Assembly (NCBI GenBank): GCA_965112735.1
Contig: OZ218954.1
Coordinates: 1,674,001 to 1,738,000, forward strand
Direction of reading: 5' to 3'
Length of the DNA: 64,000 nt
Origin: Phaeosaccion multiseriatum
Taxonomy: Eukaryota; Protista; Ochrophyta, other classes
Notes under the pieces: generated by a model
What the model was told of the DNA's origin: nothing
Database searches by the model: none
What the model saw: the letters and a program-made list of their open reading frames with translations, nothing else
Translations under genes and position numbers: made by a program
Shown: positions 6,629-60,372 of the stretch, in pieces
Position numbering within the stretch: position 1 is the stretch's first letter
Layout of the letters: each line of letters starts with the position of its first letter

Positions 6629-6636
6629 CGACAACG

Positions 6637-6678
<42 letters not shown>

Positions 6679-11453: not shown

Positions 11454-12076
11454 AGTTGCGTGCACAGGGCACTACCCTCCCATCCCCCCTCACACTCCAG
11501 CGCCGTCAGCCCTCCATCCGCCTGAGAAGAAATAGGGCGACACCCCCCCCCACCCTCCCCGCAGCGCATTCGGTCTATACCCCTCCGCACTCTCTTTGCC
11601 GCGAATCCGTCCATCTCATCCAAGGAAAAGCCGCAATAAGTCCAGTCCAGAGGCCCACGGCGGGCAAACGGGGCGAGAGAGGGGTGGGGCAGCAGGGCGG
11701 TACTCGAAGAACTTGCACCATGCAAGCAAGCAAAACCCACCACCACACACAAGCCTCTCTCCTCTCCCATTCCCTCTCCACCTCCATCACCGAAGATGGC
11801 CGCCGCACCAGCCCACCACCAGAGCATGTTGGGGGCAAAATTTACTCTTCAAAGCGCTTGTGGGCAGTCCTGCGGTCGTCCATATGGGGTGGTACGTACT
11901 ACCGCCCCCCCCCCCCCCCCCCCCATCTTTCCTTCCTCTTCCTCCCCCTCCTCTTCCTCGCCATTCCCCCCCCCTCCCCCCCCTCTCACAGCGCATCTCT
12001 CGGGAGGTTCCATGTTCCATGTGGTGCCATCCATCTGTCTATAGGAGGGGGGTTCCAACTTGTGCCATCCATCCGT

Positions 12077-13743: not shown

Positions 13744-14143
13744 GGTTTCACGTATGTGCGTGCGAGTGTGCTTTTCCTGCCGTCCTCCTCCTTTGCCTCA
13801 CTCTTCCAGGCTTTAAGCTCCCCCTCCGCTTTGCTCTCTTCTCAAGGGACAAGAGGACGTCTCTATATACAAGAGGAGGTTGTAGGGAGGATGGCACGTA
13901 TCTCGTCCTTCTCAGAGACTCCACTGACGAACTAGTCGGCCTAGTTCTAGTGTTTGACGGTAAACACTGCAAGAGGGGCAAAGCCTCGATATCTCCTTTT
14001 TCTTTTGTTTTTTTTTCTTCCCCCCTTCCTTCGCACCACAAAATCCCAGGGGGGTATTGTGGAGCTCCTCTATATTTAAAGTAGAGCTGTCTCAACGGGC
14101 AGTGAAAAAAAAATATCCCAAAATTTACATAAAAAAAGAGGAG

Positions 14144-17100
14144 ATGGCTGCCGCTGCTGTGCAGATACCGCGAGGTATCGACCCAGTTTGGTGCGTACTC
14201 GCTATTTTCTTGAGAATAGTACGCTGTGCTGGTCCAGAACCGGAAAGGGCAAGGAGAAATCCCAGCTGAATTTTTTTGCCGCCCTCTCCTCCTCCTTCTT
14301 ATCCCCTCGTTCTTCTCCTTCTCTCTGTTTATTCCATACTCAGGTATTCCCTTTCCAAACTACGGCGGAGGAAGTTCGACGATTGCAGTAGCATATGCTC
14401 AGAGATCTTAGAAGTCAACAATAGAGACCAGGTACTTCGCTCTCACCAGCTCTCCGCCTCTTGCCGAACCGAGCGCCCCCTCTTCACTCTTCTGCACCCA
14501 TGCCCCCTTTGTCTGCCTTCTTGAAATCACCCCCGTGTTGCTCACTCACCCCTACCTCCGCATGATACGCCCATCAATACCCAATGCCCTTGCTCCACAG
14601 GCCGTGTGGTATCTCAAGTGCCGAGCGCTGGCCCTGAATGAATATGTAGATGATACTGAGATGGAGGAGGAGGGGGTTGGGGAGGTTCTACTTGATGACA
14701 ATGCGACGGCAGATATGCCGAGACCAGGCACATCCCTTAGCAGGTACGCCAAGCTTCTCGTTTTAGACACAGAAGGCGAAGAAGACCTGAGCCTCAGCCC
14801 TGCTTTTCGTTTGTAGAGCTGCTGCTGTGCCCCAGATCCTGACCCCCTCCCGTGTCTTCCTCCCCTTTGTTCTTCTCTCTCAGACCAATGACTCAGGCCC
14901 TAGGAGGCAATCAAGGTATCAGGAGGGGAGAGAAGCAGAACCCAGCCCTGCTGATAGTCGACTTGAAAGAGGACAGATTGCGTGTGCTGTATGTAGAGTC
15001 ACGTGACACATAGATAACACACCCTTCCTCGCGTATCCACTCAATTTCAAACATGTCCACCCCCCCCCCCCCACCCACCCACCAAGGTGTGAGGCCAATG
15101 ACTTCATCGGGACGACCGCTGACGGGATTCAGCAGGCCGGGCACTTCTTCTCGCGTAAAGACGGGGCAGACAGACGTGTCTACCGCGATGAAGGGCACCA
15201 AGCCCGGCACAGCGAGACCCACCACGATCATGGGCAGGTATGTTTAGCTTTTTCTGTTCCCTTGCCTCGACAATGGCCCGCCCCCCCCTCTTGCTTGCCT
15301 GCCTACTGAGAACGTGAGAGTGAGAGGAGCTGAGGCTAATCCGTGCTGCTCCTGCTCATGCTCATGATCCTGCTCCTGTTGCTGCTGTATCACCGACTTC
15401 TGCTCACTGTTCGTCAGGGAAGTGCGGCTGGGCACGGCGAGCATGGCGTCTAGTAGCGGCAACACCGGCGTGCTCTTCATCAACACGGACCGCTTGGACT
15501 TCCGCAAGTACGCCAAGAGGCCACCGCTGGCCATGGTGCTGGAGGAGTACCTGCTGCACGTGGAGGTGTGTGGGCAGAGAGAGGCATAAAGGCAAAGCAG
15601 AGGCGTATGGGAAGGGCAGAGGTGTTTGGGCAGAGCAGAGGCTTAGGTAGAGCAGAGGCATATTTGAAGGGCAGAGCAGAGGAGCAAGTGAAAGCCGACG
15701 CAAGGTGTCGTGTGCCGGTTAGAAGCGTGTTGAGTGCTGTCTACCCCTCTTTCCCGTTAAGGGGAACGAAGGCTCAGTGTCAACCTCTCTTGTGCTTCTT
15801 CTTCCACCGCAGAGGAATCCCCGCAAGGCCTTGGAGCTGGCGTCGGAGGCCACCGTTGCCTATGAGTACAAGGACTGGTGGTGGAAGGCCAGGTAATGCG
15901 CATACCCACGCACGCAAGCACGCACACACGAACACACACACGCACACGCACATACACGAATACGTAAGAAAGAATATGCAACGCACGCATACACCAACAC
16001 ACTCACTCACTCACTCTCTCACTCACCCCCACCCCCTCCTTACCCCCTCTCTCCCTTACCCCAGACTGGGTAAGTGCTACTACAAGCTGGGGCTACTGCG
16101 TGAGGCAGAGAAGCAGCTGAAGAGCTCCCTCGACGCGCAGGAGATGGTGTGCACATACCTGGACCTATCCAAGGTAGGGTGGCAGTACCTGCTGTTAGTC
16201 AGTCAATAGCACTACCTGGTGTTAGTCAGTCAGTAGCAGTACCTGGTGTTAGTCAGTCAGTAGCAGTACCTGGTGTTAGTCAGTCAGTAGCAGTACCTGG
16301 TGTTAGTCAGTCAGTAGCACTACCTGGTGTTAGTCAGTCAGTAGCAGTACCTGGTGTTAGTCAGTCAGTAGCAGTACCTGGTGTTAGTCAGTCAGTAGCA
16401 GTACCTGGTGTTAGGCAGTACCTGGTACTGGCGTCTCTCCTCTATCCCTCCGACCCCTTCTTCGACTGTCTTCTCATTCCCTCCCTCCCCTTCCTCTCCC
16501 CCCAAAGGTTTACCTCCGACTCGACCTTCCCAACACCGCTCTGGACATGTTTATGAAAGCTCTGGAGAAGCACCCTGGGGAGAGCCGTCTCCTCGTGGGC
16601 ATTGCGCGTCTGCACGATACACTCAACGACAGCGCCAAAGCCATTCCTAGCTACAAGGCTGTACTCAACCTCGAGGCCAGCAACGTGGAAGCTATCGCCT
16701 GCCTCGCTGCCAACCACTTTTACACCGACCAGCCCGAGTTAGCTCTCCGCTACTACCGCCGCCTGTTGCAAATGGGCGTCAACAACACGGAGTTGTGGAC
16801 CAACTTGGGTCTCTGCTGCTTCTACGCCTCCCAATATGACATGGCACTGAGCTGTCTCCAACGTGCCTTGTCCATGTCAAGCGATGCCAACATGGGTGAC
16901 GTTTGGTACGCGGTGGGCCAAGTGGCCATTGGTATCGGAGACTTGGGGCTGGCGTATCAGGCCTTTCAGGTAATCGTGCGTAGCAACACGTATGTAGGCA
17001 GGCATACGCTGTACGTGTGTAAGTACGAAGGCAGACAGATGGATGCATGGAAACAGGTAGACAGGTAGACAGGAAGATGACTCCCTCCGTCCCTCCCATC

Positions 17101-17297
17101 ACCTCCCCTCCCCTCCCTCCATCCTCCGTAGATTGCCATTTCGGTGGACAAGAATCACTCCGAGTCCTACAGCAACCTGGGTGTGCTGGAGATGCGCAAG
17201 GGGCAGACCGACGCTGCGAGGAACAACTTCCGCACCGCACAAAGCCTGGCGCCTTACCTCTACGAGCCCTTCTATAATGGCGCCCTGCTGGCCTACA

Positions 17298-17378
<81 letters not shown>

Positions 17379-17772
17379 TGTGTGCGCGCGTTCGTGTGTG
17401 GTATGTGTGTGTTTGCGCGTGTGTGCGTGTGTGTGCAAGCGAGTGTGTGCGGGCGTTTGGCGGAGTCCTGCTCTTATTCTCATCCACGAGACCGTCTCCC
17501 TCTGGCCACTCTCTCTGCCCCTCTCCACGGCTGACCCACTCACTCACTCACTCACTCACTGCCTGCCTGCCTACCTGCCTGCCTGCCTGCCTGATTGAGT
17601 GCCCATATGCCTCTGACTGACTAATTGCCCATATGCCTTGACTGACCGAACCCAGGTTGGCGACTTCCCGGAGGCCTTCTCCACTGTCAAGAAGGCCCTG
17701 GAGGTGTACCCGGACCACAGCGATAGCAAGGAGCTGCTCAGGCTACTGCAGCAGCACTTCGCCGTGCTATAG
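14144..17772 (+). CDS. BBS8: Bardet-Biedl syndrome 8 / TTC8, BBSome TPR subunit
   Basis: [120 protein letters not shown]; TAG at 17770-17772. Confidence 0.97.
16180..16428 (+). repeat. 27-bp intronic minisatellite (GTAGCAGTACCTGGTGTTAGTCAGTCA)n, about 9 copies
   Basis: Near-identical units start a few bases after the AAG|GTAGGG donor of a BBS8 intron. Confidence 0.95.
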
Positions 17773-18644
17773 CTTAGCAGGTAGAGCTTATTTTAGCTGC
17801 TGCTTTAGCTGTAAGGTGGAGGGCTGCCCAGCCTACTGCAGCAGCACTTTTGCTGTACTATAGGCTTTCCCTGCTGCCTTGATTGGAGCTTTGCTATTAG
17901 TAAGGGCGGCCCTTCATCGCTGTGCTGATACAGCTCTTGCTTTTGATAAAGCTGTTACTTGAGTAGAGCTGCTTGGGTGAAAGGTTCACGCAGGGCTGCT
18001 CGTCTACTTTTCATAGCCTTTCCATCGCTCGCCGTGCTATTGAATGCAACTGCTTTGCCTAGAGCTAACTGCCAGGGTATAGTAGGCGGACGGCTGTCCG
18101 TCTGCGGTCGACGGGGTGGGGCGGTGTGCTCGCCTGTACTTTGTTCAGGAGTGCGAGAGAGACTCGGCGTGGAGGGGGGGAGACTCCTCTCCTTGCTCGA
18201 TCCTCCCCAATGGGATGTACATACATACGCACATACACACATACATACATACATCCACAGCTTTTTTTGTTGAAGCACTTCATTCTTAGTATGATGCTTA
18301 CGATAGGGCTTTGATATACATGCTGCTGCTGCTGTATCACCACCAACTGCTGCCGCTGCTGCTGCTGCTGCTGCTGCTGTTCCTACTGCTGCTGCTGTTC
18401 CTACTGCTCTTCCAATAAAGACTCGGTGGTTAATTGGAGAAAGGCTTCCTCCGAACCGCGGGCCTCGGCAGCAGGGTTGTGTGGATGTAGGGCATCTCAA
18501 CATCATCTCAAGGAAAAAAAAGTCCTCGCAGTTCCTCCCATCCTACCTCACTCTGCCCTGCGCCTCGATGAAAGCACCTGCCTGTGATTGTAAGACCTTA
18601 ATACCACCATCACTAGCTGGATGGAGATTGACCTGCCTCATTCA

Positions 18645-21600
18645 TCAGAGCTCTTCCTTGCCTGCCTCCTTCTCTCCCCCTTCTACCTCCTCCTCCCCCT
18701 CCTCCTTCGCCTCTCCCTCCTCACCCTCTTCCTTCTTCTCCTCCCCGTCCCCCTTTCCCTCCTCCCCCTCCCCCCCCTCCTCCTCCTCCTTCTTCTCCAC
18801 CTTGGGAGCAGGCTTCTTACTAAGCCGTGCAAACACGACCTTCAGCGAGTGCAATTTGGGCTCCACGTCGGCGGCCGAGAAGGCTGGTGTTTCGTGGCCT
18901 GGTGTCTCCGCCTGGGCGGCCTCCTTGTCGTTGAGCCACTTCTCAACATCGCTCACTAGCTCCAGCACCTCTGTTCGCTCCTCTTCTGTGATCCATGGCC
19001 GCTTCGTCTCCCACTCCGCCATCTGGGAACGGAGGTACGCACGCACGCGCACACGCACGCACACACACACGCACGCACACACACACGCGCACACACACAC
19101 ACGCACACACACACACACACACACACAAGAGAGAGAGTGACAGAGAGGTAGAGAGAACGAGAGAGGGAGAGGGTCGGTTAGACCAGTGTGGGAAATAAAA
19201 GCGCCACATTAAGAAGCCCACTGGCGGTTTCCTCTCTGTGCATACACACACACACATCCAAAACCTCTAGTTCCCCCTCTCCTCTCCTCTCTCTCTCGGC
19301 TGCGTCCCTTCATATTACACACACTCACCCACCCACCCACCCACACAAATACGTATACTTAGGTTGAGTATCTGTCGACATGAGCGTAAACATACGGCAA
19401 CGACTACCTACATACCCTCTCACCTTATCCCCCACGCGTTTCAAGTCGCCCCTCGCGCTCTCCACCGCTGCCGGTCGAGCAGTGAGCTCCTCCCATCGCG
19501 TAAAGATGGGGTCGGCCACATTCTCTAGCGTCAGCTTCTTCGCTCTATATACAGGCGCCTCCTCGTCCCACCCATCGTCATAGAGCCATTCCTCCAGATC
19601 TCCAGACAGAGCGATCACCTCCTGTGGACGAAGTGCAGGATAGGGTAGGGTAGGGTACGGTAGGGTAGGGTAGGGTAGGGTAGGTGTGTGGTAGGGTAAG
19701 AGTAGGGGAGGGGAGGGTATCGATCACACACCACACATGAAGTGTAGTTCAAAGCAGAGCAGGGTGGGGGCGGGGGGGTGGGGAGGGTCGTGGTTGGGGT
19801 GGGGTTGAGTTGCCAATGGAATCGCGTTGGGTGCTCAGACGAAGGGAGTCACAGATGCCACGGATGAGTAGGAGGGAGGGAGGAAGGGGAGGGAGCCGAG
19901 ACTAAGTGCGTGTTCAAGGGAGTGCCTCCCCCCCCGCCCGCCCGCCTCGCTTATTCTTTCGTCTTGGAGCTCGTTGGTCATCCTCTTCTCTCTCTCCCTC
20001 CCTTCCCCTCCTCTGTCCTCCTCCTCTCCGCTCGTTGGTCACCCTCTTCTCCCTCCTCTCCCCTCCCCTTCTCTCCCCTCCTCACGCACCGATCGCATGT
20101 CGTCTGTGCTCACGGCCTTGAGCTCATCCTCCTTGTCGTAAAGCTTGTTCCTCACGGTCAGAATATAAGACTCCAATCCGTTCTTGGCTTCCTCCTGAGA
20201 GTGACAACGACAAGATCAGAGAGAGGGGGGAGAAAGAGAGAGAGAGGCGAGAGAAAGAGAGAGAGAGACAGGGGGAGAAAGAGGATACAGAGAGCGAGAC
20301 AGAGAGGGGGGAGAGAGAAGAGAGAGAGGGAGAGAGAGGATAGAGAGAGCGAGACAGAGAGAGGAGAGAGAGAAGAGAGAGAGGGAGAGCAAGAGAGATG
20401 GAGAGAGCAGAGGAGAGAGGTAGGGAGATGTGTGTGAGTGAAAGTACTTCATACTTCACGTACACCCACACGTCGTTGCGTCGAGGCATCGCCATCGTCA
20501 AGCACACGCTCCCTCCACACAATAGGAAGGAAGTGAGTTGAGTACAAGTGAAAGCCTGCAAAGCGATGCAGCCCCCCCCCCCTTCCCTCCCCTCTCTTCT
20601 CTTACCTTCTCCTTGCGCAGGTGATCGGCCTTGTTGAGGGCATCAATCTTGGCCAGTCCGGCCTTGAGATCCGCACCCACAAATGGCTTTACGGTCATGA
20701 ACTCAAAACTCTCTACGATGTCGAGTGGCTGCTTCTTCTTTTCTGTCACCATTTTGGTCTTTGTCACCTGCTTGGTCTTCTTCTTCTTCTTCTTGATCTT
20801 CTTCTTGTCCTTCTTTTTCTCTTTCTTGTCCTTTTTACTCTTCTTATCCTTCTCTTTCTTACTCTGCCGAGCAGCAAAGCAAGAGCAAGCAGCAGGAGCA
20901 TGGGAAGGAAGGGCATCATGGGTCGGTGCCAGGAGTATGGTGTCGCAAGAAGGCCGCAGGCAAGGCGGAGTTAGACGACAACGTCATGCACTCATACTCT
21001 CCTCGTATCGTACGACACATCTTTTCCCCTTTGCCCCTTGCTCCTCAATGCTCAGCGCTATGGGCAGTATAGAGTCAAGGGTATAGATAGAGAGTCAAGG
21101 CTTCATCACACACCACACGTGTCGTCACCATCACTCAAGCCCCTTGCTGTCCCGTTCCATCCCGTTTGCATGCGTGCGTGCGTGCGTGGGGCGGGGGCTT
21201 AATAACCAAACCGAAACTCCCTTCTCTTGAAGCCAGCCCGACCCTCAGCGCAGTATGTGCGTGTGTGTGTGCGTTCATGCCCTCACCTTCTTATCGTCGC
21301 CATCTCCCTCCTCCTCCTCCTCCTCCTCGTCCTCTTCCTTGCCCTCGCCCTCCTCGTCCGCCGCCGTCGCCGTCTCCTCCTCCTCTTCCTCCTCTTCCTC
21401 CTCCCCCTTCTTTCCCTCCTCTGTGCCCTCATCCGACGCAGCCTTCTCGTCAGTCTCGCCATCCACTACTGTCGCTGTTGCTCCTTCCTCCTCCTCCTCC
21501 TCATCCTCTACCGTAACCGTTTCCTCATACGTCACCTCCTTTCAGAGGATTACACGGATGGAGGGAGGGAAGGAAGGAAGGAAGGAGGGGGGCGGGGGGT

Positions 21601-22054
21601 GTCAGCTTATCCGCCGATGGCAATCAGTCATCACTCTATCCGCTTACCTCCGATCTCTCCATCACTACATCCCATTCGTCCATCCATCCCTCCATCCATC
21701 CACTGCCATCTACCCGTGTACCCCCACCTACCTTCTCAAACTCCACGTGTGCCTCTGCGCTAAGGAGGGACGTTAAGCCACTCGCATCCGTGGTGAAGCG
21801 CAGAGTGACCTTGGGCTGCCCCATGCCCTCCTCACTCATCTTCACAGCAAAGTCCGCAATGCCCGTGATGTTGTACGAGGTGAGCATCTGCTGCGTGCCT
21901 GCCGGGAGGAAAGGGTTCTCCTGCGGCGGGTGGTGGTGAGGGTGGGATAAGGTGAGGCGAGGTGAGGTAAGGTCACGTAAGATGAGGTAAGATAAGATAA
22001 GATAAGGTAAGGTGGGGCGACGTGAGGCAAGGTGGGGCAAGGCGGTCGCAAGGG

Positions 22055-22094
<40 letters not shown>

Positions 22095-23370
22095 CGAGCG
22101 GGGGGCGGTGGGGGGGATCGGGCAGGTAAGAGAGCGCCATGCCACAGAGCTCTGCGCTTTCGGGGTCTGTATTGTGATCGCTTGCGTCTCAACGCTCCTC
22201 CTCCTCCTCCTGCTCCTCCTCCTCCTCCTCCTGCTGCTGCTGGTCCTGCTCACCTCTGCATAGGTTACGTTGACTTGCATGTCTGAGACATGCGTGAGAG
22301 CAATAGTCTTCTTGAAGGGCAGGGGAGTTGCCGCTTCGTACAGGTTGAAGCGCTTCCCCCATGCCTCAGCCTCCTTGGCGTTCTTCTTCTTCTTCTTTCC
22401 GCTCTCCTCCTCCTTGCCAAACAGCTTGCTCCACGCGCTCTGTGTTGTGGTTTGTGAGGGGATCGGGTCAGGATGAGGCGCGTAAACGACTTGACACGAG
22501 ACGCAGCCATGAAGGCCTGCTGGGGCAAAAAAATATATAAAGTCCACTCAACGCCCGCATTCCCTCTCTCGCACTCACTCACTCACTCACTCCACGCCCC
22601 TCAACCATGCACGCACGCACGCACGCACGCACTCATCACCCATTCAAACTCACACTACACCCCTCTCGACGCTCCCGCCCCCACGCACGCACGCACGCAC
22701 GCACGCACTCACATCCTTCTCTTGTGTGTCGATGTCCTTGAGACTGACGTCAACGGCAAAGGGCGTAATGTCCGTCAGGCCCACGGGTCGCACTTGGAAG
22801 CTTTTGGAGAGGTTTGCTCCTCTAAACACCGCTCCGAGGGCCATCGACTCGTCTCCATTCAAGTGTACGCCAAGGCTCAGGGCCTCGTTGTCTGGGGGAG
22901 AGGAGGAGAAGGAGAGGGAGGAGCAGGAGGATGAGGAGGAGGAGGAGGAGGAGGAGGAGGAGGACGACGACACGTAAGGAGAGGGGCATGGAGTGACGAT
23001 GCCATCGTTGGTAATTCCCGTAACGACTATCAACACACTTCCTTCCCTCCCCCCCTTCTACTAGAGGGATTTGAAGAAGCTTCAAAGACACGTTGCCATG
23101 GTGGCACATACGTTGGTGATATGATACACGTCTTGGCGATACACGCACGTCGCCAATCTTGCCTGCCCCCCTTGTCCCCTGCCTACCTGCGTTGGTCGCT
23201 CCGTTATCCTTGAGGTATTTGTTGAGCCTCTCCTGTACCTTGGGTGTCCTTACGCCCCCCCCAATCATCTCCACCTCATCAATGTCCTTCAAAGTAAGGC
23301 CTGCCATCTCCAAGGCCATCTCAATGGGGTGGAGGAGTCTTGTGTTTCCACATCGTGTTCCAAACGGGCG

Positions 23371-23401
<31 letters not shown>

Positions 23402-26400
23402 GGTGGGGGTGGGGGGGGGGCGGGGCAGTTGAGAAGGTGACTAGAAGAGAGGGGGCGAAACTGACAGAGGGAGAGAGAGGGACAGAAGAGAGACCGACAA
23501 GAGAGAGGTAGGCAAAGCAGAGAGGGTTGACTCTGACCTGCTGAACACGTCCTCAGAGGCCTTCTCAAAGTCTGCCCGCGAGACGGAGGTGGTGAAGTCA
23601 ATGTCCTCGTGTAGGGACTGCAGCGTGACAGGGATCTCCTTGTTGGCAGACAGCACCTCCTTCACCTTACGGGCCTGGGCTCGGATCTGGGGGAGAGGGG
23701 GGGAGAGGGAGGGAGAAGGGGAGAGGAAAGAGAGAGGGAGAGAGAGAGAGACATGGTGTGTGTGTGTGAGGGAGAGAGAGAGTGACAGAAAGAGAGGGAG
23801 AGAAGGAGAGGAGAGAGAGAGAGGAGCCCCTCCCCCACTGCTCCTCGCTCACCTTGCCCATGGGCCGCGCAAACTCCCTCACGTCCCCTCCCCCCCACTT
23901 CTTGTTGAACTCCTGTGCAAGCTTGTCCACAAGGGCCAGGTCAAGCCAAGCAGAACCCAGCGTTGTATCCCACCCTTTGCCGAGGATAGTCACCTCGCCC
24001 ACGTTCTGTGGAGGAGGAGGAGGAGGAGGAGGAGGAGGAGGAGGAGGAGGAAGAGGAGAGGGAGGAAGGAAGGCACCGTACGTACACGCGCACGCACACG
24101 CACAGGGAGAGAGAGAAACAAAGTGAGATACGGGAGACGCGAGGAGGGCCCACTAACACCCTTCCCCTCCCTCCCCTCCCCTCCGTCCTCACTCACCTTG
24201 CCCTTGACCATCTTCTTGCCGAACTTGGCCACAGTGACTTGAGCGCTGTTGGCACCCATGTTGTAGAACATAACCGTGTAGTCCTTCTCGTGCTGCTGAT
24301 CGGTAGACAGCTGGACTGCCGCAGCGGTGTTCTCATCCAACATGCTAATCAGGTGCATCCCGGACAGAGACGCAGCGTCCTACACTCGTGGGTGGGGATG
24401 GGGAGAGATGACAGAAGATGGAGGAAGAAAGCAGATGGAGGGAGAAAGGCGTGGCGGAGTGAGTAATTCAGAGCGGCGAGGCGAGGAGATCGGAAATATC
24501 ATCTCCTGCGCCCATCCTGCCTCCCTTCCTCCCTCCCTCCCTCCCTCCCTCCATGCCCTGCTCTCTCCCCCCTCTCTCCCTCCATCCCCCTTCCCTCCCT
24601 CCGTCCTTCCCTCCCTCCGTCCCTCCCCTCCCATACCTGCAGCGCTCTCCTCTCCATCTGCGTTGCGAACTCGGGCACAGTGAGCACAAAGTCCTTGACG
24701 GAGTAGCCAAAGATCTTAGTCATGTCCTGTGCACAGAGAAACGAAACAAAGAGAGAGAGGGAGAGAGAGAGAGAGCAGGGGAGAGGGGAGGACACAGAGA
24801 GACGGTTACACGGTTACACAGTTACACGCACCACAAGAGTGAGATGGGACGAGAGTCAGATAGGAGGTAGCATGAAGACAGGACGGCAACTGAGACTTCG
24901 CCGACTTGACCCCCTATGGGGAAGGGAGGGAGGTCGAGGACTGACGCGGCACATAGGCGCACACGTGCATCGCCCTCTCAGCCATACCCTCTCATACCCT
25001 CTCGCTCTCTCTCTTATCTCACACACACACTTTCTCTCTCTCACACACACTCACTCTCCTCTCTTTCTCTCTCTCACACACATACACCTATGCTCTTCTC
25101 TATCCTAAGCCCTCTCCCGTCCAGGCTTCCTCCACCCCTCCCCTCTCCCATACACCTCCGCTGTCTCTCACACCTCCTCTCCTTACCCATACACCCCCTC
25201 CTCTCCCTTTCTCCTTACCCGTGCGTGCGTGAGCACCATGGACACAAGCTCCTCCGGTGTGTACACAATCTCTTCTCCCCTGTGTGGTGTGGATTGGACG
25301 TTACACAAAATAGCATGTAAGCGAGGGAGAACAAGAAGACGAGCTTCACTCTCTAGCCCACACCCTTGGCCCATTTCCCTTTCCACTTTGGTGCCCATCC
25401 ATCCATCCATCCATCCATATGGATGGATCCATCCATCCATCCATCCATCCGATTGCTTGTTCTTTCTCCTGAGTGGGTAAAACATGAGCAGGGGGTGTGT
25501 GTGTCGTGTCGTGCACATGGCACAAAACCTCTCCCCTTGCCCTTGCCCCCCCCCCCCACACACCAGCGAGTATGAATGGTCTCTCACTATACTGTATATG
25601 CTACTAAGAAGTACTTCCACCCATTCGGACGGTCTACACGCACTTTTCTTGGATCCTGAAGGCGTGTCTCCCCTGAGTCTCGTTCCAAAACAAGTCGGTT
25701 GGCAGGCCTGAAAGGGGGAAAGGGTAGCAAGCAAAACACAGACGGTAAGAGAGAGAGAGAGAGAGGGAGAGAGAGAGGGAGGGAGAGAGGGGGAGAGAGG
25801 GAGGGAGAGAGAGGGAGAGAGGGAGAGAGAGGGAGAGAGAGGGAGGGGGGGTGGGGCGGGTGGAATGCGTGCGTGAGTGATCCTATGCCGCGCCGCAAAG
25901 AACAAGCACTGAAACGAAAGAGATACGTTTCGGCGAGCAGTCCAGCCAGGGGATCGGCAAGAAAGCAGAGAGGGTGGCGAAAGGAGGAGGGGGGTTCCGA
26001 GTCTGCGTGTTCGAACCCCTTCTGTCTCACCAATGTTATGGTACGCCTGCACGTCGGGGTGATCTGGGCCCTTGCCGAGGATGGTGGTGAGCTGTTTAGA
26101 GGCCAAAGGGGGGCGAGGGGGGAGGGCGGGGGGCGACGGTGAAGTATATGTTAGAGGCGTATTAACATGTCCGTCTGTGTGCTCTTCTTCTCCTCCTCCT
26201 CCTCATCATCATCATCATCCTCCTCCTCACCTTGGTGAATGTTTCCTTTGGCTTCCTTGTGAGCAGCAGGGCGGCATCGCTGCCAAAGGATCGCTCCCCC
26301 TTGTCAAAATTGACGGCAACCTCCGTCTTCCGCTTACTCGCTAGATTGGTCACAATCTCCATAGGCTTGCGAGGAGCCACCAGAGCCACCTGTAGCGAGA

Positions 26401-33707: not shown

Positions 33708-42876
<9,169 letters not shown>

Positions 42877-49014: not shown

Positions 49015-51789
49015 TCATAACCCTTTTCCCCCTCTCTATGTGTCCATCTGCCACAATGCCAACCCCCCCCTTCTCCGTCGTGGGTACTGTGCTTCTCTCC
49101 TGTACAATAGTCGGTGGGAGGGGAGGACTCTCGCCGAAGTATTCGCCACTGAGTTCCACGCTCACAACCTCAGGTAAGACTCTTCTTGCAGTACAGACCG
49201 AATGGATCGATGATGATACGACGGTGCCGATTTGGAGGACCCTCATTGGGAGATTCCATACACAACGGCCAGCCGTTTGATGTTCATGACTGCTTGATGA
49301 TAGGACCGACCGACTAGATGGAGGAGGCTCATCGGGAGATTCCACAGAGGCGAAATGGTGTGAGGCTTCGTATCGGTTCCTTCCTTGACCCCTCCTTCCC
49401 TCCCCTCGCGCCTCCCACCCCCCCCACCTTTCCTTGTCCTCACTACCAAAAGCTATTACCGTGCCGCGGTCTCTAATGGGCTCATCTCCCTCCACCGACG
49501 AGCTCGGTCCAAGAAGAGGCCCCCCAAGAAGGCAGCAACAACCGCTTCCGATGACGCTGCATCACCCGACGCCAAGATACGTAATGGCGACCTTATCGTT
49601 CACATGAGTCACAGGCATGAGCCGCCTGTCGCGGGGGGAGCCATCGAGATCATCGCCGACGGTGCCGAGGTGGGTGGGGGATTGGATTGTATAGGAGGAG
49701 GTCCAGTCACTCTGCCTCCTTGAATGAATGCCCCAGATATCATTTCTCATCGAATTTCTGTTCATTCTCTCTCCCTCTCGCTCTGTCTCTCCCTCCTTCC
49801 CTCTCTCTCTCTCCCCCCCCCCCCCTCTCTCCCTCCCTCCCTCCCTCCCCCTCTCTCCATGTCTTCTCCCTCCCTCCCTCTCCCTCTCTCCAGCTACTGG
49901 TAGTGATGAAACCCTCCACCATTCCCGTCCACCCCTGCGGTGGCTATCACCACAACTCGCTCGTGGAGATTCTGCAACACAACTCGGAAACCGACAAGCG
50001 CCTCTTTGTGGTCCATCGAATCGACAGACTCACCAGCGGCATTGTCATCTTTGGAAGGTACGAAAGATGGGAGTCATCATCATCTGTACCTTCTTGTACC
50101 TTCTTTGCTCTCTCTAGAACACGGTAGGTGGGCAAGATGGGGCGGGGCTTGGAAGAGTGGCCTGTTACTTTCGGTAGGCGACTTGTCCCACAGAGTCCTG
50201 GAGCAACAAGTAGCGCAAAGCCCTGCAATCCCTCGACTGCCGCGGGCATCCCCCCCCTCCTCCAGTGTGGTGCACCACCCACTCACGCCAGTCGACTCTG
50301 TTTGCCTGTGTCGGTGTATTGTGATGCACGCATATGGGCGTGTGGGTGTGTGGGCGGGTGGGTGCTGCGCCTGTGCGCGTAACTGGTGCGGGCCTTTCGG
50401 GGGCGCAGGTCTGCTGAAGCGGCGAAAAAATTCTCTGCCCTCATCCGCACCAACAGTGTGCACAAGACATATGCCGCGCGAGTGAAGGGGAGGTTCGGAG
50501 ACCACTTTCCAAAGGGGAGGGAATGGATTGCTCCTCCCATCATCATCAGCAGCAGCAGCAGCCACAGCAGCAGTAGCAGCAGTAGTGGCTGCGGGGGAGG
50601 GGAGCTGAGCGCGAAGACCGCCGACGGGCAGAGCAAGGAAGAGGCAGAGCAAGAGGGGAAAGGAAAGGGAGAGGGCGAGGAGGTGGTGGAGATGTCGTCT
50701 CTGAGGGAAGGGGGAAGCTTGTCGGCAGGGCGCCCACAGCCCCCCCCCATGACGTGGAGCTGGGTGGCGGGAGGGGTGGAACGGGGGAAGCACGTGGATA
50801 AAAAAGGAGCAGCAGCAGCAGTTGGTGATACAGTAGCAGCAGCAGTTGGTGATACAGTAGCAGCAGCGAGGGGCGGACGTGAGGCAGGCACCCAACACGT
50901 GCATTTGAATGCGCCGATTGAGTGCACCAATCTCAAGGATGGTGTGTACGCCGTCGGAGAGAAGGGCAAGCCGTCAGAGGTGAGGGTGTGTAACGCTTCT
51001 CTCGGGCGTAACGTTCGGGTCTGAGGCGGAGGAGGAGGAGGAGGAGGAGGAGGAGGAGGAGGAGGAGGAGTAGGAGGAGGAGGAGGAGGAGGAGGAGAAT
51101 GCCCCAAGCCTCTCTTCCCCTTGCCTGTCTTTCTTACATGACTTATCTTAACTTCTTAACCCCCTCCTCTCTGCCGCCTTCTTCCTGCCTGTTGCATTGC
51201 TCCATTGCCCCCACGCTAGACCCTTATCCAGGCCTGTCACTACGACTCTGTGTCTGACACGACAATGGTCAAGTGCTTCCCCATCTCAGGTAGAACACAT
51301 CAGATACGCGTGCATCTGCAGTGGCTTGGGCACCCCATAGCAAACGACCCCAACTACGGGGGGGAGCTCTTCTTTGGTCGTCGAAGCGAGGCACCACCAC
51401 CACCAAGAGAAGCAGCAGCAGCAGCAGCAACAGTAGTCGGAAATACAGCAGCAGAAGCAGTTGGTGATACAGCAGTAGCACAAGCGGAGGACGGAGGCGA
51501 TGGTGATGGTGACGATGATGGTGACGATGACCTCACCCCCCTCCCCCCTCGCAGAGAGGGCGAGGGTTTGAGCGACTTTGCTTGTCGGACGTGCTCCCAG
51601 TGCCGCGGTGGCATTGGAGCGAGCATGGAGAGAGACATTGTGAGAGCAGCCACAAAGAGCCAGGGCATCTGGCTGCATGCGCTGAGGTACGCATCGGCCG
51701 TGCCGGAGGAGGGGGAGGACGGCGAAGGCTTTTGCTTTGAGAGCTCGCTGCCGGAGTGGTGGATAGAGGACGACGCCACTCCGTCTTAA
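48589..51789 (+). CDS. RluA-family pseudouridine synthase (RPUSD2/Pus8/Pus9-like)
   Basis: [69 protein letters not shown] (catalytic Asp), [43 protein letters not shown]. Confidence 0.93.
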
Positions 51790-51830: not shown

Positions 51831-51925
51831 ATATACTACGTAATATACTACGTAGTACTTTTTGTTTTGTTTATTCTAATTAAAAAAAAATATATATATA
51901 TTCTAATTAAAAAAAAAAAAAAAAT

Positions 51926-51957
<32 letters not shown>

Positions 51958-51960
51958 CTA
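51831..51960. repeat. AT-rich tract with short duplications and (TA)n
   Basis: ATATACTACGTA x2, ATTCTAATTAAAAAAAAA x2, then (TA)n; the only strongly AT-rich patch in the window. Confidence 0.85.
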
Positions 51961-51970
51961 TTGATGAATG

Positions 51971-52590
51971 ACCGGTTTTGGTGGGGCGAGATGCCCCACT
52001 CGGTGAAAGTGGGTATTTTTAGTACCCAATTTTTTTAAAAGTGGGTATTTTTAGTACAGTACCCAATATGGACCAGTAGCGCCCCTCCCCCCCCCCCTCC
52101 TTTTTGGTGTATCTCTCCCCTCCTCCTCCAAAATATACTACGCTATGATATGACGATTTAATGGTATTACCACGATAACAATGGTATTCATATTTACAGA
52201 CACACTTAGTGTCCGTCCTCAATCATGCATGGCATACAGTAGTAGTCAAAATCGCCTTCCGCAAAACCCTTGCTGTCGCAAAACTCGACGGTGCACATGT
52301 GGTGCACGAGGTTTCCACACGCTCTTTCGGATGGGCAGAGGAACAGCTTGACTTGCGAGGGCTTAGTACAGCCATACGAGCATGTGAAGGCCATGTCTCC
52401 CTCTCTCAAGCCGCCCAACGACGGCGCTGCTGACGCGGCAGCAGCGGCAGTAGCGGCCGCAGCGGCCGCATCAGAGGCAGCAGCAGAAGCAGCATCAGAA
52501 GCAGTACCAGTACCAGTACGCTGTTTTTTTTGGGCCCCCCTTCCCCCACCCCTTCCTCCTCGTCCTCCTCCGGCTCCGCCTCCTCCTGTT

Positions 52591-52639
<49 letters not shown>

Positions 52640-55564
52640 TGCTGCTGCCACCTCCCTCCTCGTCGTCCTCTGCACCGCTATCACCTCCATCCCCCTCCTT
52701 CGACTCGTCTGCACCAGTGCCACTTTCCTTCGCCCTCGCCCGCTTCGCCCGTTTTTTCGCGTCCGCCTGCTGCGCGCTCCATAAATTATACACGGTGGTC
52801 CACACCAGCTGATTGAAGCGGCGCTTGTGAGAATCAGAACGAGACTTGATGTCAAAGGCGTCTTTGACTGCGTCAAACATGCTTCGCGCTTCTTCAAGCG
52901 TCGGCTTGTCCTTCCAGAGCCCCTTTTCTTTCGCCGCGGATTCAATCGCACCCATCAAACAGCAAAATTTTGACATCCTTCGCTTCTCCGCCCTCCCCTG
53001 CACGTCTGCTGTCGTGAATTCTCGAAGGCGAGGAGTGCCTGTCATCCAAGCATCCCAAGCAGCGCGCACAGTGAAGCTAGGGACCTCAAAGTGCTCGGGA
53101 AGGGTATGCCACCGGCCGTTGTAGAGATACAGAGGTGGCTGATCTGCACCTGCACAAGAAGAAGAAGAGGGCGGGGCGCTGCTCGAACCCTCACCAAGGC
53201 CCAGAGTGCCTGCCTGGTGAGCCGCGAGAAGGTCGCTGAGCCCACTCTTAGAAAAGGCTGCGTCGAGGGTCGTCTGCAGGGCCCTGCTCACACCCAGACT
53301 GGTGACAGTGCCAGAGGCCTGTGCATTCTCCTCCAGAACGTCACGGATCAGCGTCTCCAAGTCGACCTTGATCGTCTGGCCCAACACCTCAAGCTTGCCG
53401 CCTAGAGAGGCCACGCTGTCCGCCACGACTTGGAATTGCCTCAGCTGCACGACGTGGGGAGGAATCCCGGTTGCAGAAATCTCGTCCGTCTCGTCCGGAT
53501 ACTTCAGCACGACATGCTCTGAAAGGTCCGCCAGCAACCTTTGATCTCGGAAGAGCTGTGTCGTGAAAAGAGGGTGATTCTCCTGAAGAGTGCTGCGCAG
53601 AAAGCCGGCGTGGTACACCACACTGGCAAGACAGAATTCAGCCACCTTCCTCAATCTCAGCGGCACGTCCCTGAAGCAGCTCACAATGGCTCCCGCGAGC
53701 ACGTCTTCAATGCCCTCCTTCGCTGTGCCGTCCACCTTGAGGCGCTGAAAAAAGGGAGGAAGCAATGCAAACTCCTTCGCTGAGATGTTCGCCCCGGAGG
53801 CAGCCCGGCCCACATACTGATCTGCTGCATTGATGGGGTTGAAGTAGATGCCCTGGACGCCGGGAAGAGACCATCCCATTCGAAGTTGCACAGCAATTGG
53901 GTTGGGAGCAGCGGACGAGCCGCTTGTGACGTGCGAGGCAGCGCCCTTGCGCCCAGAATGAGTGCCGAGGTCCTCTGGAGTCAGCCCCATGCCTTCCAAA
54001 ATGGACGAGTTCGCCGCCGCCGTACGTCTGAGGAAGCCGCAATACCTATCGTACTGATTGTTGCCAGCGAACAGCGCGTTCTTCTCAAAACCAAAGCTCA
54101 GGAGGTAAACACCAAGCGCGAGGACGGGGCAGATCTCCGGCATGATTGGATTCGCGTAGACGTGGCGAGGATGTCGGGCCTTCTCTCCCAGCTGGTCGCC
54201 CTTTTGCTTCCCAAAATAGACGCAGAGCGCGTCCCCCTTCCACTCGAGATGATCGAGACAAATCTCCACACAGTTGGTGGCGCGGCACATCAGATTCCAG
54301 GAGAGAACGAGGAAGGGGTGGCCAAAGGCGCCCTGTCTGTGCCCGTTCTCACAGACTGCCGAGCTCAGCATTGCTGCGATGTACACAAGCGAAGGAAACA
54401 GTGGCAACCAAAGACGGCGTCAGGGCTAGGAAGTGAGTGGGGGGCAGTCAATGCATCAGCCACTTGTCTCCACCCACTCCACTAGTTTCCACTGTCCACT
54501 GACTCCACACAGCTGGGAATTTACCTTTGGCAAGAGCGCGGTAGAGAGCGAACGGCATGGGAGCCTTCCCTTCTCTGACTTCGACATTTCCCTCCTGCTT
54601 CTCTCCTGCGATCGTCCTCTTCAGCCCCTTGGTGAGCGTCGCAAGGTCGCTTTGCAATTTGCGGTGCTGCTCCTCCTGATGGTAGTCTCTGTACAGATTG
54701 AAGAGTGCAGAGCGTTTCGACTGTGCACCGGCCTTGGATAAGCCCTTCGGCCCCTTCTTGACTTCAAGCAGCCACCCGAAGAACGCGTCGGCTGTCAGCA
54801 GATGGAACAGCAAAGGGTGCGGCGCCCGAGGTGCTTGGATCAAGTGTGCCTTCACCCGCTTCGTCCACTGCGCCTCAGCCTTCTTCTTGGCCTTTGCTTG
54901 GGCTTTCGCTGCTCTCGACACCTCAGCCGGCGTCTGCTGTGCCGCTGCAGTGGCACCACCCGCTCCGCCAGGTGCGGCGGCTGCTGCGGCTGCTGCTGCT
55001 CTCCTCTGTGCTTCCTCCTCTTCCCCATCTTCCCCGTCTTCCTCCTCTTCCCCCTCCGGTGGAGCAAATGCTGTCCTGAAGTCAGGGTCCAGAAGCTCCG
55101 GGTGCTTGCGGAAGAGGTATCGGATCAGCATCGTGGAGGCGCATGCATATCCACTTCTCGAGCGTGGGGCGATGGTGTTGTTTCGGGGGTTCTGAATCTG
55201 CTGCTGCTCTGCAGTAAGCGGTGCTTCTTCCCCCTCTGCTGCTGGTGCTTCCGGAACCGTAGCAACAGCGACGTCAGCCATGGTATACTCTGTTCTCCTG
55301 CAAATTCACGTGGGAGATGCCCCTCCCACCACTGGCATCAGCTGTTACAGCCGGGTATCGTCCGCGCAGCCGCTGCTCCTCTTACATAGCTGCACTGTGC
55401 AAATATGCTGATGCTGTGAATGAAATAAACTCCACGTGGGGAGGGGGGGGAGAATGCCCCACAACCAAAAAATATTGGATAAAAAACTTGAAAAACGAGC
55501 ATTTATGGCCCATAAAATATCCAAAACAATTATTTCGTGGGGCAGGTGCCCCACTTCACGGTAC
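51971..55564 (-). mobile_element. Crypton-like (CryptonS-type) tyrosine-recombinase DNA transposon; boundaries approximate
   Basis: Single recombinase gene with one short intron among intron-rich host genes; AT-rich flanks; palindromes GTGGGGC-n4/5-GCCCCAC at 51981-51999 and 55537-55554; TATGG direct repeats at 52067-52071 and 55504-55508. Confidence 0.8.
52206..55281 (-). CDS. Crypton tyrosine recombinase, 974 aa, with C-terminal PHD-type zinc finger; join(complement(54525..55281),complement(52206..54373))
   Basis: A 151-bp GT-AG intron (54374-54524) joins the two ORFs in frame (RALAK-A-MLSS). Catalytic set: WNLMCR (R), KQKGDQ (K), GTHSGRKG (HxxR), RMGW (W), VQGIY (Y). Also RHVYANPIMPEICPVLAL and DQYVGR motifs like those of oomycete/diatom Cryptons. 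Confidence 0.9.
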
Positions 55565-56191: not shown

Positions 56192-59100
56192 CTACGACGA
56201 CACTTCTGTCTTCACAGTAGAGGTGAGCTTCACCGCAGGTACTGCAGTAGTTGGTCCTTCTGTTCTTGCTGTAGCTGCTCTTGCTGCAGCCGCTGCCATT
56301 GTTCCTGTGAACGCTGGCACAGGTGCCGGTGCTGCAGCTCCGGCAACTGAAGTGGGGGTGGGTATTGCCGAGTGCTGCCCTGCTGCCGCTGCTGCTGATG
56401 GTGGTAGTGCTGCCGGCGGTGGTGCTGGTGCTGGTGCTGATGGTAGTACGGGCGCGGGTGAACTCAGCGTTGCTGGTGCTTGCCGTTGCACTGGCTGTGC
56501 TGATGTTGCTGGTAGCGCTGGTGCTGCTGGTGGTAGTACTGCTGGTGCTGGTGCTCCTGATGGTAGTGCTGTACCCGGCGCGGATGGAAGTGATTGCACT
56601 GCTTGCACTCCCTGTGCTGGTGCTGCTGATGGTAGAGTTGAGGGTAGCGGTGATGTTTGCGCTGGTGCTTGCCCCGCCTGTGGCGCTCCAGGAACAACAT
56701 ATGCAGCAACAGGAGGAGACACAGCAGTTGGTGCTACAGAGGTCGATGCCATTGCTGCCACCGGTGCTGCCGCCGGCGACGCCGCGGTCTGTTGGAGGGT
56801 CATCTGTGCTGCTGATTGCGCTGACCCTATTGGGGCTGCGGTGTACACTACCCCCGGTGATGGTTGTAGTGCTTGTGGTGTGACAAGCGGTGCTGGTACT
56901 CCTGGCGCTGCTGGGGGTGGCATTGGCGTGGAAACCGTCGTCTGGAGCGCGGTCATGGGAGCGACCGTGGTGGTAGCAGTGAGGTGTGTGACGTAGCCTT
57001 GCACCCCCGCCCCCCCTGCTCCTGCTGCTGCGCCCGTTCCACCAGCACCACCACCAGCACCAGCAGCAGCAGCAGCAGCAGCAACAGAGGCAAGAGGGGG
57101 CAGCCCTAGCGGCGTTTGGGGGAGCGCTTGTTTGGGGAAAGGTGCGGCGTCAGTGCCCCTCCCACTGTCCTCCGTCCAATCCAGCCCCTCGGCCTCACTA
57201 AGCAGCTCATCCACCTTCCTCCCCTGTGTGTACCACTTGGGCATCATGCCTGCCACTGCTGCAGCAGAAGCCGCAATGCTCGCTTCTCGGTGCTCCTTAG
57301 ATGTTGCGTCGACCCCTGGGGAAGGCTCATCGACAATGGAGACGGGAGAGAGGAAGCGAAACAGTCCTGCGTCCACCGTGTTGTTCGTAGAGACGAAGGG
57401 CTGCAAGGAAGGGGCCAGGGTGTGCTGACCTGTGGACGTGTGGACAGACGGAGTAGCAGTAGGTATGAGATGTGAATGAGGACAGAACATGGACATACGT
57501 AGTGAAGGGTCACAAGAGGGAAGAGGGAGGGGCAAGGGGAAACTAAGCCCGCCTTGCTTGCATTTGTTCCATTCCTGCCCCCCTCCGTAACTGCCGAGCC
57601 TGCCCCTCTCTTTCTCTCTCTCTCTCTAAGACATGTGTGTGGTGCTTCTTGGCCTTACCTTCGTAGAGGTCCTCCAGCCTCCGTTTGCTCCCTCTGCTCC
57701 GCCTCTTGTTGCTCCCGCCATGTTTCGAGTCCATCATCACGTCTCCGTGATCGCCATTTTGCTTTGCTTTGGCAAGCTGTGGAGGCAGGGGGGTGGGGGG
57801 GAGAGGTGTGGCGGGTGCGTGTCATCAAAGCAAGAGACACAAATACAATGGCGAAACAAAGGACAGTGGGACAAAAGAAAGGATAGGTGGGAAAAGACTG
57901 TCACTAAAAGCTGGGCAAACGCCACCCCGAAGTGTGGAAGGATGACGATTACTATCACGATAAGCAAGTCGAGCAGACGAAGGGCAAGTCGTCAGTGATG
58001 TCAGTAAGTCACAAAGAGCCCCCCCAGCACACACAAGCATCAGCTCCGAACACCTCGAATCGCAGAGGCCCTAAACAAAAGACCACTTCCCCGCCTCTCA
58101 CCTCCTCTCCCCTCTTCTCACCTCCTCTCCTCTCCTCCCCCCACCTCCCCCCCTCCCCCCCTCTCTCACACACCTTTTGAAAGTACTTCTGGGCGTGCGT
58201 CCGAATCTGAACAACGGTTCTTGTCTTGATGAGTCCAGCAATCTTCTTCCACCCCTTCCCATGTAGCTCCAATCCCTGCAAGAACAGACGATGCTCCTCG
58301 TATGTCCACCTCCCGGTGTTCTCCTTCAATGGGGCTCCATCGGGACCCACGCCTGCCTCTCCTCCGACCCCTTCTTTGCCGCTCGAGGGTTTGGTGTTCA
58401 TTTGTACCTCCACGACCGCACGGGGTGCAGGAAACACTCCGGTTGCGTCCACTTGGCCTGTAAAGGTTCCTCCTATTGTCGGTCGAAACTCCACCGTACC
58501 CGCTCCTGCACCCCCCGGCGGTGGAAGTCCATAGCTCCCATTCGCCAATGCTACTCCTCCTGCTACTCCTCCTGCTGATGCTACCCCGTTTGACCCGGTT
58601 ACTGTCAGCACTGGTGGTGGCAGGCCTGCTGCACTCACTCCCACCGGCAGTGAGACACCTCCTGGTTGCACTGCTTGCATCGCATGTCCACCACCCACAG
58701 GGTGAACCCTTCCTCCTGCCACCGCCGCCGCCGCTCTCTGTTGTGCGAGTAGCAGCTGCTGATTCTGCTGCTGCTGTGACAGGGGTATTGGGACCCCACT
58801 GAGCCCACCACTACCACCAGCAGCGGCGGCGGCAGCAGCAGCAGCAGTAGTAGCAGCAGTCGCGGGACCAGCCGCTCCATTGGTAGCAACGCCGGTAGTG
58901 GTCGAGGTACGCATCATCGCAGCGGCTCCGGTTGCGTTGGCAGGAGAGCGCTGCGCTTGCCCCATCGCCATCCCGGAGAGACCTCTCCCTAGCGTTACGC
59001 CTGTAGTGTAGTGAAAACGCCCAGCGAAGAGAAGCGAGGGGTGCGGTACGGGGGGGCGAGCAGGAACATGTAAGGGTTTCCGGGTCGGCTTTGTCTGGGT

Positions 59101-59610
59101 AGAGGACACACCGGGGTGGGTGGTCATCGGGGGGGGGTGGAGACTGGCTAACGGACAAGTGGTAGCCCATTGCGGACAATCGGCAGGGACACATATGGGA
59201 ACAAAGGGAAGGTGTGGAGGCGAGGATACACACGGGGCAGGCAAAGGAGGCAAGAGGACAGAGGACAGAGGACAGTCGGAGATCGAACACCTACCTGCCC
59301 CTAGCCCCGCTGCTGCGGGGGGAAGAGAGCCCTTCCCTCTGCCGATCATCGCTGACGGGAGGGGTGCGGGCGTGGACAGAGCGGGGCCTTGCACCCACGC
59401 ACCCACACTCCCACCCATGCTCACCCCTCGACTCGCCCACTGCTGCGGCTGCTGCGGCTGCGGAAGAGCCTGCGGTACCGGGTGCGAGTTTGGAGCAGCA
59501 GGAGCAGCAGCAGTGCCTGGAACAGGAGGCTGACGTGGTAAAGGTCCTTGTCCCGGTGTAGTTGTTGTTGCTGGTGATGCTGCTCCAGTCGAAAGCTGCA
59601 TTACTGGCGC

Positions 59611-59642
<32 letters not shown>

Positions 59643-60372
59643 CTGCCGTTGTTGCTGTTGCTATTGTTGGTGTTGGTGTCGGTGGTGTTGATGTTGCTAT
59701 TGTTGGTGTTGTTTTTGTTGTTGGTGTTGTTGTTGGTGTTGTTGTTGTTGTTGTTGTTGTTGTCGTTGTTGTCGTGGCCACGTGCAATGCGGGAGGTTGA
59801 GTGGTCTGCTGCTGCTGCGTCGTCTGTGGCAGCGGTTGTGGTAGCGGTGCTGCTAGTGGTGCTGCTCTTGGTGCCACGGATGGTGGCAGTAGTGCAGCTG
59901 GCACGGGCTGCTGCGGCTGCTGAGTTACAGCAGCGACTGCTGCCACTGATGTAAGAGGCGGCGTGGATGGCAACTGGCCTGCTGTTGGCGCTGCTTGGCC
60001 TACTGTTGCCGCTGCTGCTCCTGCAGCGGCCCCACCCGTCGTGGGCGTAGCGACGCTGTTTGACGGTCGCTTGACCGGGGGCTCTACTTCAGGCGGACTC
60101 TCCAATGCTCGCTTTCCAATCGCCACTGTCTCCTCCGCCCCTTTCGCGCTTGTTGAAGCTGAAGCTGATGCTGCCGATGCTGCTGCAGATGGTGGTGTTA
60201 CCGACGCTGCCGGTGAAGAGCGCGCCTTGATGACAGCAGCAGTATCACGGGCCCCCATAGTGCTACTGACTAAGCCGCTACCTGCCACCGCTATTGCTCC
60301 CGCCGGGACGTAACCAACAGCAGCAACAGGAGCCCCCGCCGGCGCTGGAGCCGACACAGAGACTGTACTCAT
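56192..60372 (-). CDS. MYB-related (SHAQKYF class, CCA1/LHY/RVE-like) transcription factor with long Ala/Pro/Thr-rich regions
   Basis: ENTGRWTYEEHRLFLQGLELHGKGWKKIAGLIKTRTVVQIRTHAQKYFQK at ~58175-58325, spliced to LAKAKQNG.. and GQHTLAPSL..; the 5' end and the 59001-59294 intron are inferred. Confidence 0.9.

Follow-up and report, generated by a model that had tools for sequence, protein, structure and literature searches.

The stretch of 64,000 nucleotides analysed here (termed the window; contig OZ218954.1 of Phaeosaccion multiseriatum) harbours a repeated element, the sole gene of which encodes a tyrosine recombinase of 974 amino acids (aa). With a probability of about 0.62, this element represents an intact copy of a young, high-copy and transcribed CryptonS-like transposon, whose recombinase has gained a C-terminal extension including a Cys/His module and which would move by the mechanism described in the last section. 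An earlier note on the same DNA had proposed a Crypton-type tyrosine-recombinase DNA transposon, and this proposal holds, the element being intact, multi-copy, young and transcribed. The remaining open reading frames (ORFs) of the 3.6-kb repeat are overlapping low-complexity frames.

51973–55563, minus strand: whole repeated element (~3.59 kb; ends deduced from contig depth and uncertain by ~15 bp)

Gene structure and transcription

54525–55281, minus strand: exon 1 (757 nt; aa 1–252 and the first base of codon 253)
54374–54524, minus strand: intron (151 bp; GTAAAT...CGCAG, i.e., GT..AG; phase 1)
52206–54373, minus strand: exon 2 (aa 253–974, including the stop codon)

Two long minus-strand ORFs (55281–52206) join across the intron to form a single open frame of 974 codons, as predicted by the earlier note; with the intron retained, the recombinase frame stops at codon 278. 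Assembled contigs of public sequencing runs (X1, X2, X5 and X6) were aligned to the window, and one contig each of X5 (record 21, 632 nt) and X6 (record 28, 507 nt) skips exactly 54374–54524, in agreement with the predicted junction. The joined form was not found in the contigs of X1 or X2, those of X1 running through the 151-bp intron. The library label of X5 is only a guessed 'DNA?'; since an X5 contig is also spliced at the 240-bp GT..AG intron (50978–51217) of the neighbouring host gene for a pseudouridine synthase, this run behaves as an RNA-derived library. Contig depth in X5 falls by a factor of about six upstream of 55356 and of about five below 52058, which suggests a transcript contained within the element.

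Run X6 belongs to the same study and is labelled as a different organism (organism B). Its element contigs are of low depth (2–5), lie within 52130–55253 and are ~99 % identical to the element, spliced junction included. They could reflect carry-over of sample within the study or the occurrence of the same young element in a related species.

Tyrosine-recombinase core

53610–54371, minus strand: tyrosine-recombinase catalytic domain (aa 254–507; R283, K310, H391, R394, W420, Y429)

A word-indexed protein search retrieved 180 relatives, the best of which are 38–39 % identical over 72–78 % of exon 2. In alignments of 17, 36 and 120 sequences, each of the catalytic residues, i.e., R283 (in WNLMCR), K310 (in K-x-D-Q-x-G), H391-S-G-R394 (in GTHSxRKG), W420 and Y429, is invariant or at least 90 % conserved, and the full R-K-HxxR-W-Y set claimed earlier is accordingly present. 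The AlphaFold2 model of aa 254–800, built from the 36-sequence alignment, has a pLDDT (predicted local distance difference test) score of 86, and the first 46 matches retrieved with Foldseek comprise Flp, XerH, Cre, the Tn1549 integrase, XerD, XerA and the recombinase-derived Ndc10. Superposition of model residues 1–254 with VIA-align yielded Z 14.0 for Flp (root mean square deviation, rmsd, 3.6 Å; 222 residues aligned) and Z 11.3 for Cre/Xer (Cre, XerA, XerH; rmsd 2.5 Å; ~152 residues), with lower scores for type IB topoisomerases. Taken together, the conserved active-site residues and the predicted fold identify the protein as a tyrosine recombinase with a complete active site. It thus shares catalytic fold and active-site set with Flp and Cre, but is only 8–15 % identical to them in sequence and possesses in addition a helical C-terminal region and a tail.

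Pfam assigned no family to either exon (E up to 1 or 10), and a sequence search of the PDB with a profile of 36 relatives found no recombinase; strong divergence is a known trait of Crypton recombinases (PMC3212892). The N-terminal region aligns with the relatives from ~aa 150 onward, and a Pfam scan covering the 43 longest of 120 relatives matched Phage_int_SAM_4 in the N-terminal part of three of them.

Probable affiliation with CryptonS

52776–53609, minus strand: conserved C-terminal region (aa 508–785; aligns with all full-length relatives)

The relatives include proteins of Phytophthora, Aphanomyces and Globisporangium as well as many metagenome and transcriptome proteins. The motifs YNGRWHTLPEHFEVP, AWDAWMTG and WTTVYN, from which a conserved C-terminal domain had been surmised, do fall in the region that aligns with all full-length relatives; the latter end 10–25 residues past the W-T-V motif. 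The earlier note had named GCR1_C and DUF3504 as the usual accessory domains of Cryptons. This does not suit the present protein: GCR1_C is a domain of CryptonF and DUF3504 belongs to domesticated Crypton genes, whereas CryptonS elements (oomycetes and a diatom) lack GCR1_C and have a conserved C-terminal region (PMC3212892), and it is such a region that the present protein carries, with no Pfam match to GCR1_C.

In common with CryptonS, the element has one tyrosine-recombinase gene without GCR1_C, the conserved C-terminal region, a stramenopile host, a size of ~3.6 kb within the listed range of 2.8–3.7 kb, and Phytophthora, Aphanomyces and Globisporangium among the sources of its best relatives. 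Listed CryptonS elements occur in 5–29 copies and have terminal direct repeats of 5–6 bp, mostly TATGG, which is a majority trait and not universal (PMC3212892). The present element differs in that (i) its protein is at most 39 % identical to any relative, (ii) this protein has ~190 additional C-terminal residues ending in a Cys-rich finger, (iii) the element ends are not TATGG and feature subterminal palindromes of 18–19 bp instead, (iv) the apparent copy number (tens) exceeds that listed, and (v) its host, an alga closest to brown algae, is neither an oomycete nor a diatom. The label CryptonS-like is a putative one, drawn from relatives of the same host genera and from the published CryptonS description. 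A DIRS/Ngaro retroelement was rejected in view of the 3.6-kb size and the lack of a reverse transcriptase.

Copy number, age and mobility

Summed contig depth over the element (52058–55549) is ~2,300–7,100 in X1 (flanks 44–105), ~2,200–4,300 in X5 (flanks 14–121) and ~12,000–26,000 in X2 (flanks 34–75). The resulting ratios of element to flank are 40–100x in X1 and X5 and ~300x in X2, the runs originating from two studies; as contig depth does not equal copy number, these values are read only as tens of copies or more. At ~21 positions an alternative letter accounts for part of the depth and the contigs break there. With only ~21 variable positions, the copies are >99 % alike. Five of the eight common coding variants leave the protein unchanged (synonymous) and three are nonsynonymous (M966K, N782I, P32L), compared to ~72 % nonsynonymous expected (binomial p ~0.04); this may be taken as a weak hint that the protein was under selection while the family spread.

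Within the window itself, BLAST searches with the element and with its protein revealed no second copy in the remainder. Exact look-ups of the 277-aa, 721-aa and 733-aa ORF products for further copies returned no record, and a metagenome scan with the 3' end sequence gave 0 matches.

The earlier note had considered a single-copy domesticated gene as an alternative. An intact ORF, a spliced intron, expression and an added host-like domain would all suit a host gene derived from a Crypton, and Cryptons have been domesticated repeatedly (PMC3212892). However, the 40–100-fold depth relative to the flanks, recorded in runs of two studies, together with contigs breaking at variants between copies, renders such a single-copy gene very unlikely, and the full catalytic set is retained, unlike in DUF3504 genes. 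Depth points to many copies instead (tens, as a rough figure). Being intact, multi-copy, young and transcribed, the element may well be active.

Element ends and putative recombination site

55559–55562: CGGT (ACCG in gene orientation), candidate terminal direct repeat, putative 5' copy
55537–55554: subterminal 18-bp palindrome GTGGGGCA-CC-TGCCCCAC, near the 5' end in gene orientation
52006–52057: pair of identical 20-nt direct repeats (AAAGTGGGTATTTTTAGTAC), 32 nt apart, next to the 3' palindrome on its inner side
51981–51999: subterminal 19-bp palindrome GTGGGGC-ATCTC-GCCCCAC, near the 3' end in gene orientation
51973–51976: CGGT (ACCG in gene orientation), candidate terminal direct repeat, putative 3' copy

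High depth sets in at 51973, and 55564 is the first position of a single-copy contig. In the whole window, the pattern GTGGGGC-N(2-8)-GCCCCAC is present at both ends of the element only. The element has no long terminal repeats, either direct or inverted, and TATGG is absent from both boundaries, the ends reading ACCG...ACCG in gene orientation. Joined in a circle, these ends would read GCCCCAC-CAAAACCGTGAA-GTGGGGC, as predicted from the single copy. Such a joined site would resemble the substrates of Flp and Cre in having inverted binding arms around a crossover region, but as a putative substrate would comprise arms of 7 bp and a spacer of 12 bp. The 20-nt repeats are possible accessory binding sites.

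A short motif is also known from the termini of CryptonF-1_cRei of Chlamydomonas (PMC9977147), where CACCG is regarded as the likely crossover site; that element is likewise a multi-copy, active-looking transposon with only a tyrosine recombinase. CryptonF-1_cRei differs in belonging to another Crypton group (CryptonF, with GCR1_C) and in that its movement was observed; the likeness of CACCG to the candidate ACCG may be coincidence.

A fourth GTGGGGCA half-site is found at 55455–55462, inward of the 5' palindrome by ~75 nt. The 3' end of the element adjoins an AT-rich microsatellite (TA repeats, poly-A; 51860–51972). This microsatellite was skipped as a repeat in read mapping, which blurs the exact boundary.

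Cys-rich C-terminal tail

52731–52763, minus strand: basic patch KKRAKRARAK (~aa 790–800), resembling a nuclear localization signal; predicted function
52392–52730, minus strand: low-complexity linker (aa 801–913; acidic, poly-Ala, Gly/Arg (RGG-like) and Ala/Ser/Thr)
52227–52382, minus strand: candidate Cys-rich C4HC3 finger (aa 917–968)

Beyond the point where the relatives stop (~aa 785–800), the protein continues for ~190 residues. The basic patch and the G/A linker are present as described by the earlier note; the linker, which contains 16 alanines after an acidic stretch, is absent from the relatives. The Cys-rich end, CSYGC-x10-CPSERAC-x4-HHMC-x18-CMPC, is followed by six further residues. 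Its position and C4-H-C3 order had been given correctly, but the gap between second and third Cys is 10 residues (TKPSQVKLFL) and not 9. The ligands would be C917, C921, C932, C938, H943, C946, C965 and C968, with H944, C951 and H974 to spare.

The Cys content is 13 % in the last 61 residues versus 1.4 % in the rest of the protein (ninefold enrichment), the remaining two frames of the tail contain stops, the G+C content at third codon positions (GC3) is 0.67 in the tail versus 0.675 in the core, and a loosened C4HC3 pattern is matched a single time when all six frames of the window are translated. These properties indicate that the tail is real coding sequence and unlikely to be due to chance. 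Between copies, the finger has a single common variant, M966K, and the majority sequence retains all eight ligands. Pfam searches with both exons, the tail and the tail plus linker (E up to 10) returned no relevant family and no domain of another enzyme.

Is the tail a PHD finger?

The ligand order C4-H-C3 is that of PHD and not of RING fingers, and a RING finger was rejected since the C3HC4 pattern does not fit. Canonical PHD spacing is C-x2-C ... C-x(2-4)-C-x(4-5)-H-x2-C ... C-x2-C. The H-x2-C and the last C-x2-C of the tail conform to it, an aromatic residue stands two positions before the final C-x2-C, and a hydrophobic LFLC precedes the second ligand pair. Two runs of a feature search in the ESM Atlas returned PHD clusters first (0.90 and 0.89; 159 and 164 shared features), and all of the ten best named language-model neighbours of the tail are PHD clusters. 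The tail is probably a zinc-binding finger and possibly PHD-like. The designation 'PHD-type' of the earlier note thus stands with respect to ligand order and the language-model lead, but not with respect to spacing or matches to known families, and the fold model is unusable.

Several observations weigh against the overall interpretation favoured here. In case of the finger, the first pair (C-x3-C) and the second pair (C-x5-C) lie outside the PHD canon and the strict pattern fails; Pfam assigned no family, PHD included, to the 71-aa tail at E up to 10; a sequence search of the PDB with the tail found no chain; and phmmer, run exhaustively against 1.84 billion cluster representatives, yielded neither a relative of the tail nor a PHD protein. 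The single-sequence AlphaFold2 model of the tail (pLDDT 40.6; predicted template modelling score, pTM, 0.26) is too poor for a fold search, and the language-model values (0.89–0.90; 159–164 features) are below the trust levels of the tool and serve only as a lead. In addition, RNA contigs are not traceable across the poly-Ala linker, and presence of the tail in the mature mRNA is deduced from the open frame and from coverage on either side of that linker. As to the element, its exact ends and the crossover repeat are read from a single copy, and a high-depth contig extends past 51973 by 11 nt whose letters do not match this flank, so that the true 3' end may differ. No transposition event was observed for the element.

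Two phmmer hits of the tail were spurious, namely internally repetitive proteins matching short words (YGC..., GCTKPS).

One alternative is a genuine PHD finger that reads histones and directs integration towards a particular chromatin state, as the earlier note had suggested. Besides C4HC3 order, the conforming H-x2-C and final C-x2-C with preceding aromatic, LFLC and the PHD nature of the nearest language-model clusters, it is in favour of this view that other transposons repeatedly carry PHD fingers as accessory domains (PMC8557442, PMC2836005). It is nevertheless judged unlikely, given two non-canonical spacings, a tail without Trp for the usual aromatic cage, lack of any match to hidden Markov models, PDB or sequence library, the unusable fold, and the location of this copy between the 3' ends of two genes and not at a promoter. 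Equally doubtful is the broader notion that a Flp/Cre-like integrase gained a tethered reader (PHD-like finger plus RGG linker), which docks on a chromatin mark or partner and biases landing. Slightly better placed, though still on the improbable side, is another kind of zinc module, i.e., a DNA-binding finger for the palindromic ends or a target motif, or a protein adaptor (RING-like, treble clef). At least eight Cys/His ligands within 52 residues, their non-canonical spacing for PHD, the missing match to PHD profiles and the presence of unusual subterminal palindromes and 20-nt repeats, which need a reader, agree with such a module; failure of the RING C3HC4 pattern, language-model neighbours that are PHD and not RING, FYVE or DNA-binding fingers, and relatives that recombine without such a module do not.

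Finally, the Cys-rich end could be a non-functional captured or chance extension, remaining in frame only because the family is young. Since the copies are >99 % alike, selection on the tail is unreadable, with M966K as the only common variant in the finger, and no relatives were found among the 1.84 billion representatives. On the other hand, preservation of all eight ligands, Cys enrichment and ordered spacing that are unlikely at random (one match in six frames of 64 kb), a GC3 matching that of the core and the synonymous lean of the coding variants make a meaningless extension a rather remote prospect.

Accessory domains of Cryptons and other transposons

The Cys-rich C-terminus occurs in none of the 120 listed relatives (of 180), and PHD had no Pfam match among the 43 longest. 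Four relatives (P0043, P0046, P0048 and P0049; 960–1010 aa) carry an OTU cysteine protease at their C-terminus. They resemble the present protein in that an accessory domain follows an acidic linker at the same C-terminal position, but differ in that the added domain is this protease and not a zinc finger. Presence of the OTU protease at the same position in four relatives suggests that accessory domains are gained at this place. The 2011 survey of Cryptons mentions neither PHD nor OTU, but a separate C48/Ulp1 peptidase (PMC3212892). In full-text literature searches, Cryptons or tyrosine recombinases co-occurred with PHD only incidentally. The earlier note knew of no description of a Crypton–PHD fusion, and no such Crypton appeared in the relatives examined or in the papers searched.

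PHD fingers are a common accessory of Ginger1, CR1, Rehavkus, Chlamys and many Chlamydomonas elements (PMC2836005, PMC8557442), which limits the surprise of such a finding. As in the present case, these are small Cys/His fingers appended to or inserted in a transposon enzyme, and chromatin interaction is their proposed role; in contrast to the Crypton tail, they match PHD profiles.

Genomic context

This copy is located between the 3' end of a plus-strand pseudouridine-synthase gene (51789) and that of a minus-strand ORF (stop at 56192). The insertion site of this one copy is thus intergenic and not a promoter. The following features were observed in the surroundings:

49687–51789, plus strand: flanking host gene for an RluA-type pseudouridine synthase (weak Pfam match to PseudoU_synth_2 on the last exon)
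34520–35977, minus strand: exon of an ABCC-type ABC transporter (closest proteins from brown algae, 57–60 % identity; next at most 48 %)
58009–60372, minus strand: 787-aa ORF with a Myb DNA-binding domain

The matches of the ABC transporter place the host among the stramenopiles, near but outside the annotated brown algae. The window is very rich in low-complexity DNA (runs of CT/GA, CACT, CCCT and GCA/GAG triplets), which gives rise to numerous long but spurious ORFs in every frame and swamps searches for repeats.

Proposed mechanism and implications

In the proposed mechanism, the recombinase would bind the two subterminal GTGGGGC...GCCCCAC palindromes and excise the element in circular form, with exchange taking place at a short adjoining repeat (candidate ACCG). 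In line with what has been proposed for Cryptons, the circle would then be re-inserted at matching short target sites. For the terminal module, the most likely fold is a PHD-like finger with two zincs in a cross-brace, held on a flexible tether. This module would take no part in catalysis and may rather dock onto chromatin, another protein or DNA.

The C-terminus of CryptonS enzymes emerges as a site of accessory-module gain, with an OTU protease in some relatives and a Cys-rich finger here. If the finger is not a reader, the finding would amount to a routine lineage-specific extension. If it is a reader of chromatin or DNA, integration by a tyrosine recombinase would be linked to target choice; for some retrotransposon integrases, chromodomains provide a link between target choice and integration. 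Should the reader-guided scenario, doubtful as it is, prove true, the element would be the first transposon in which a reader guides a tyrosine recombinase, and would offer a natural template for targeted integrases.

Cryptons are the least well understood DNA-transposon class in eukaryotes, and their movement has been seen only once, in Chlamydomonas (CryptonF-1_cRei; PMC9977147). With its intact, abundant, near-identical and transcribed copies, the present family is a good candidate for a second active Crypton, from a stramenopile alga.

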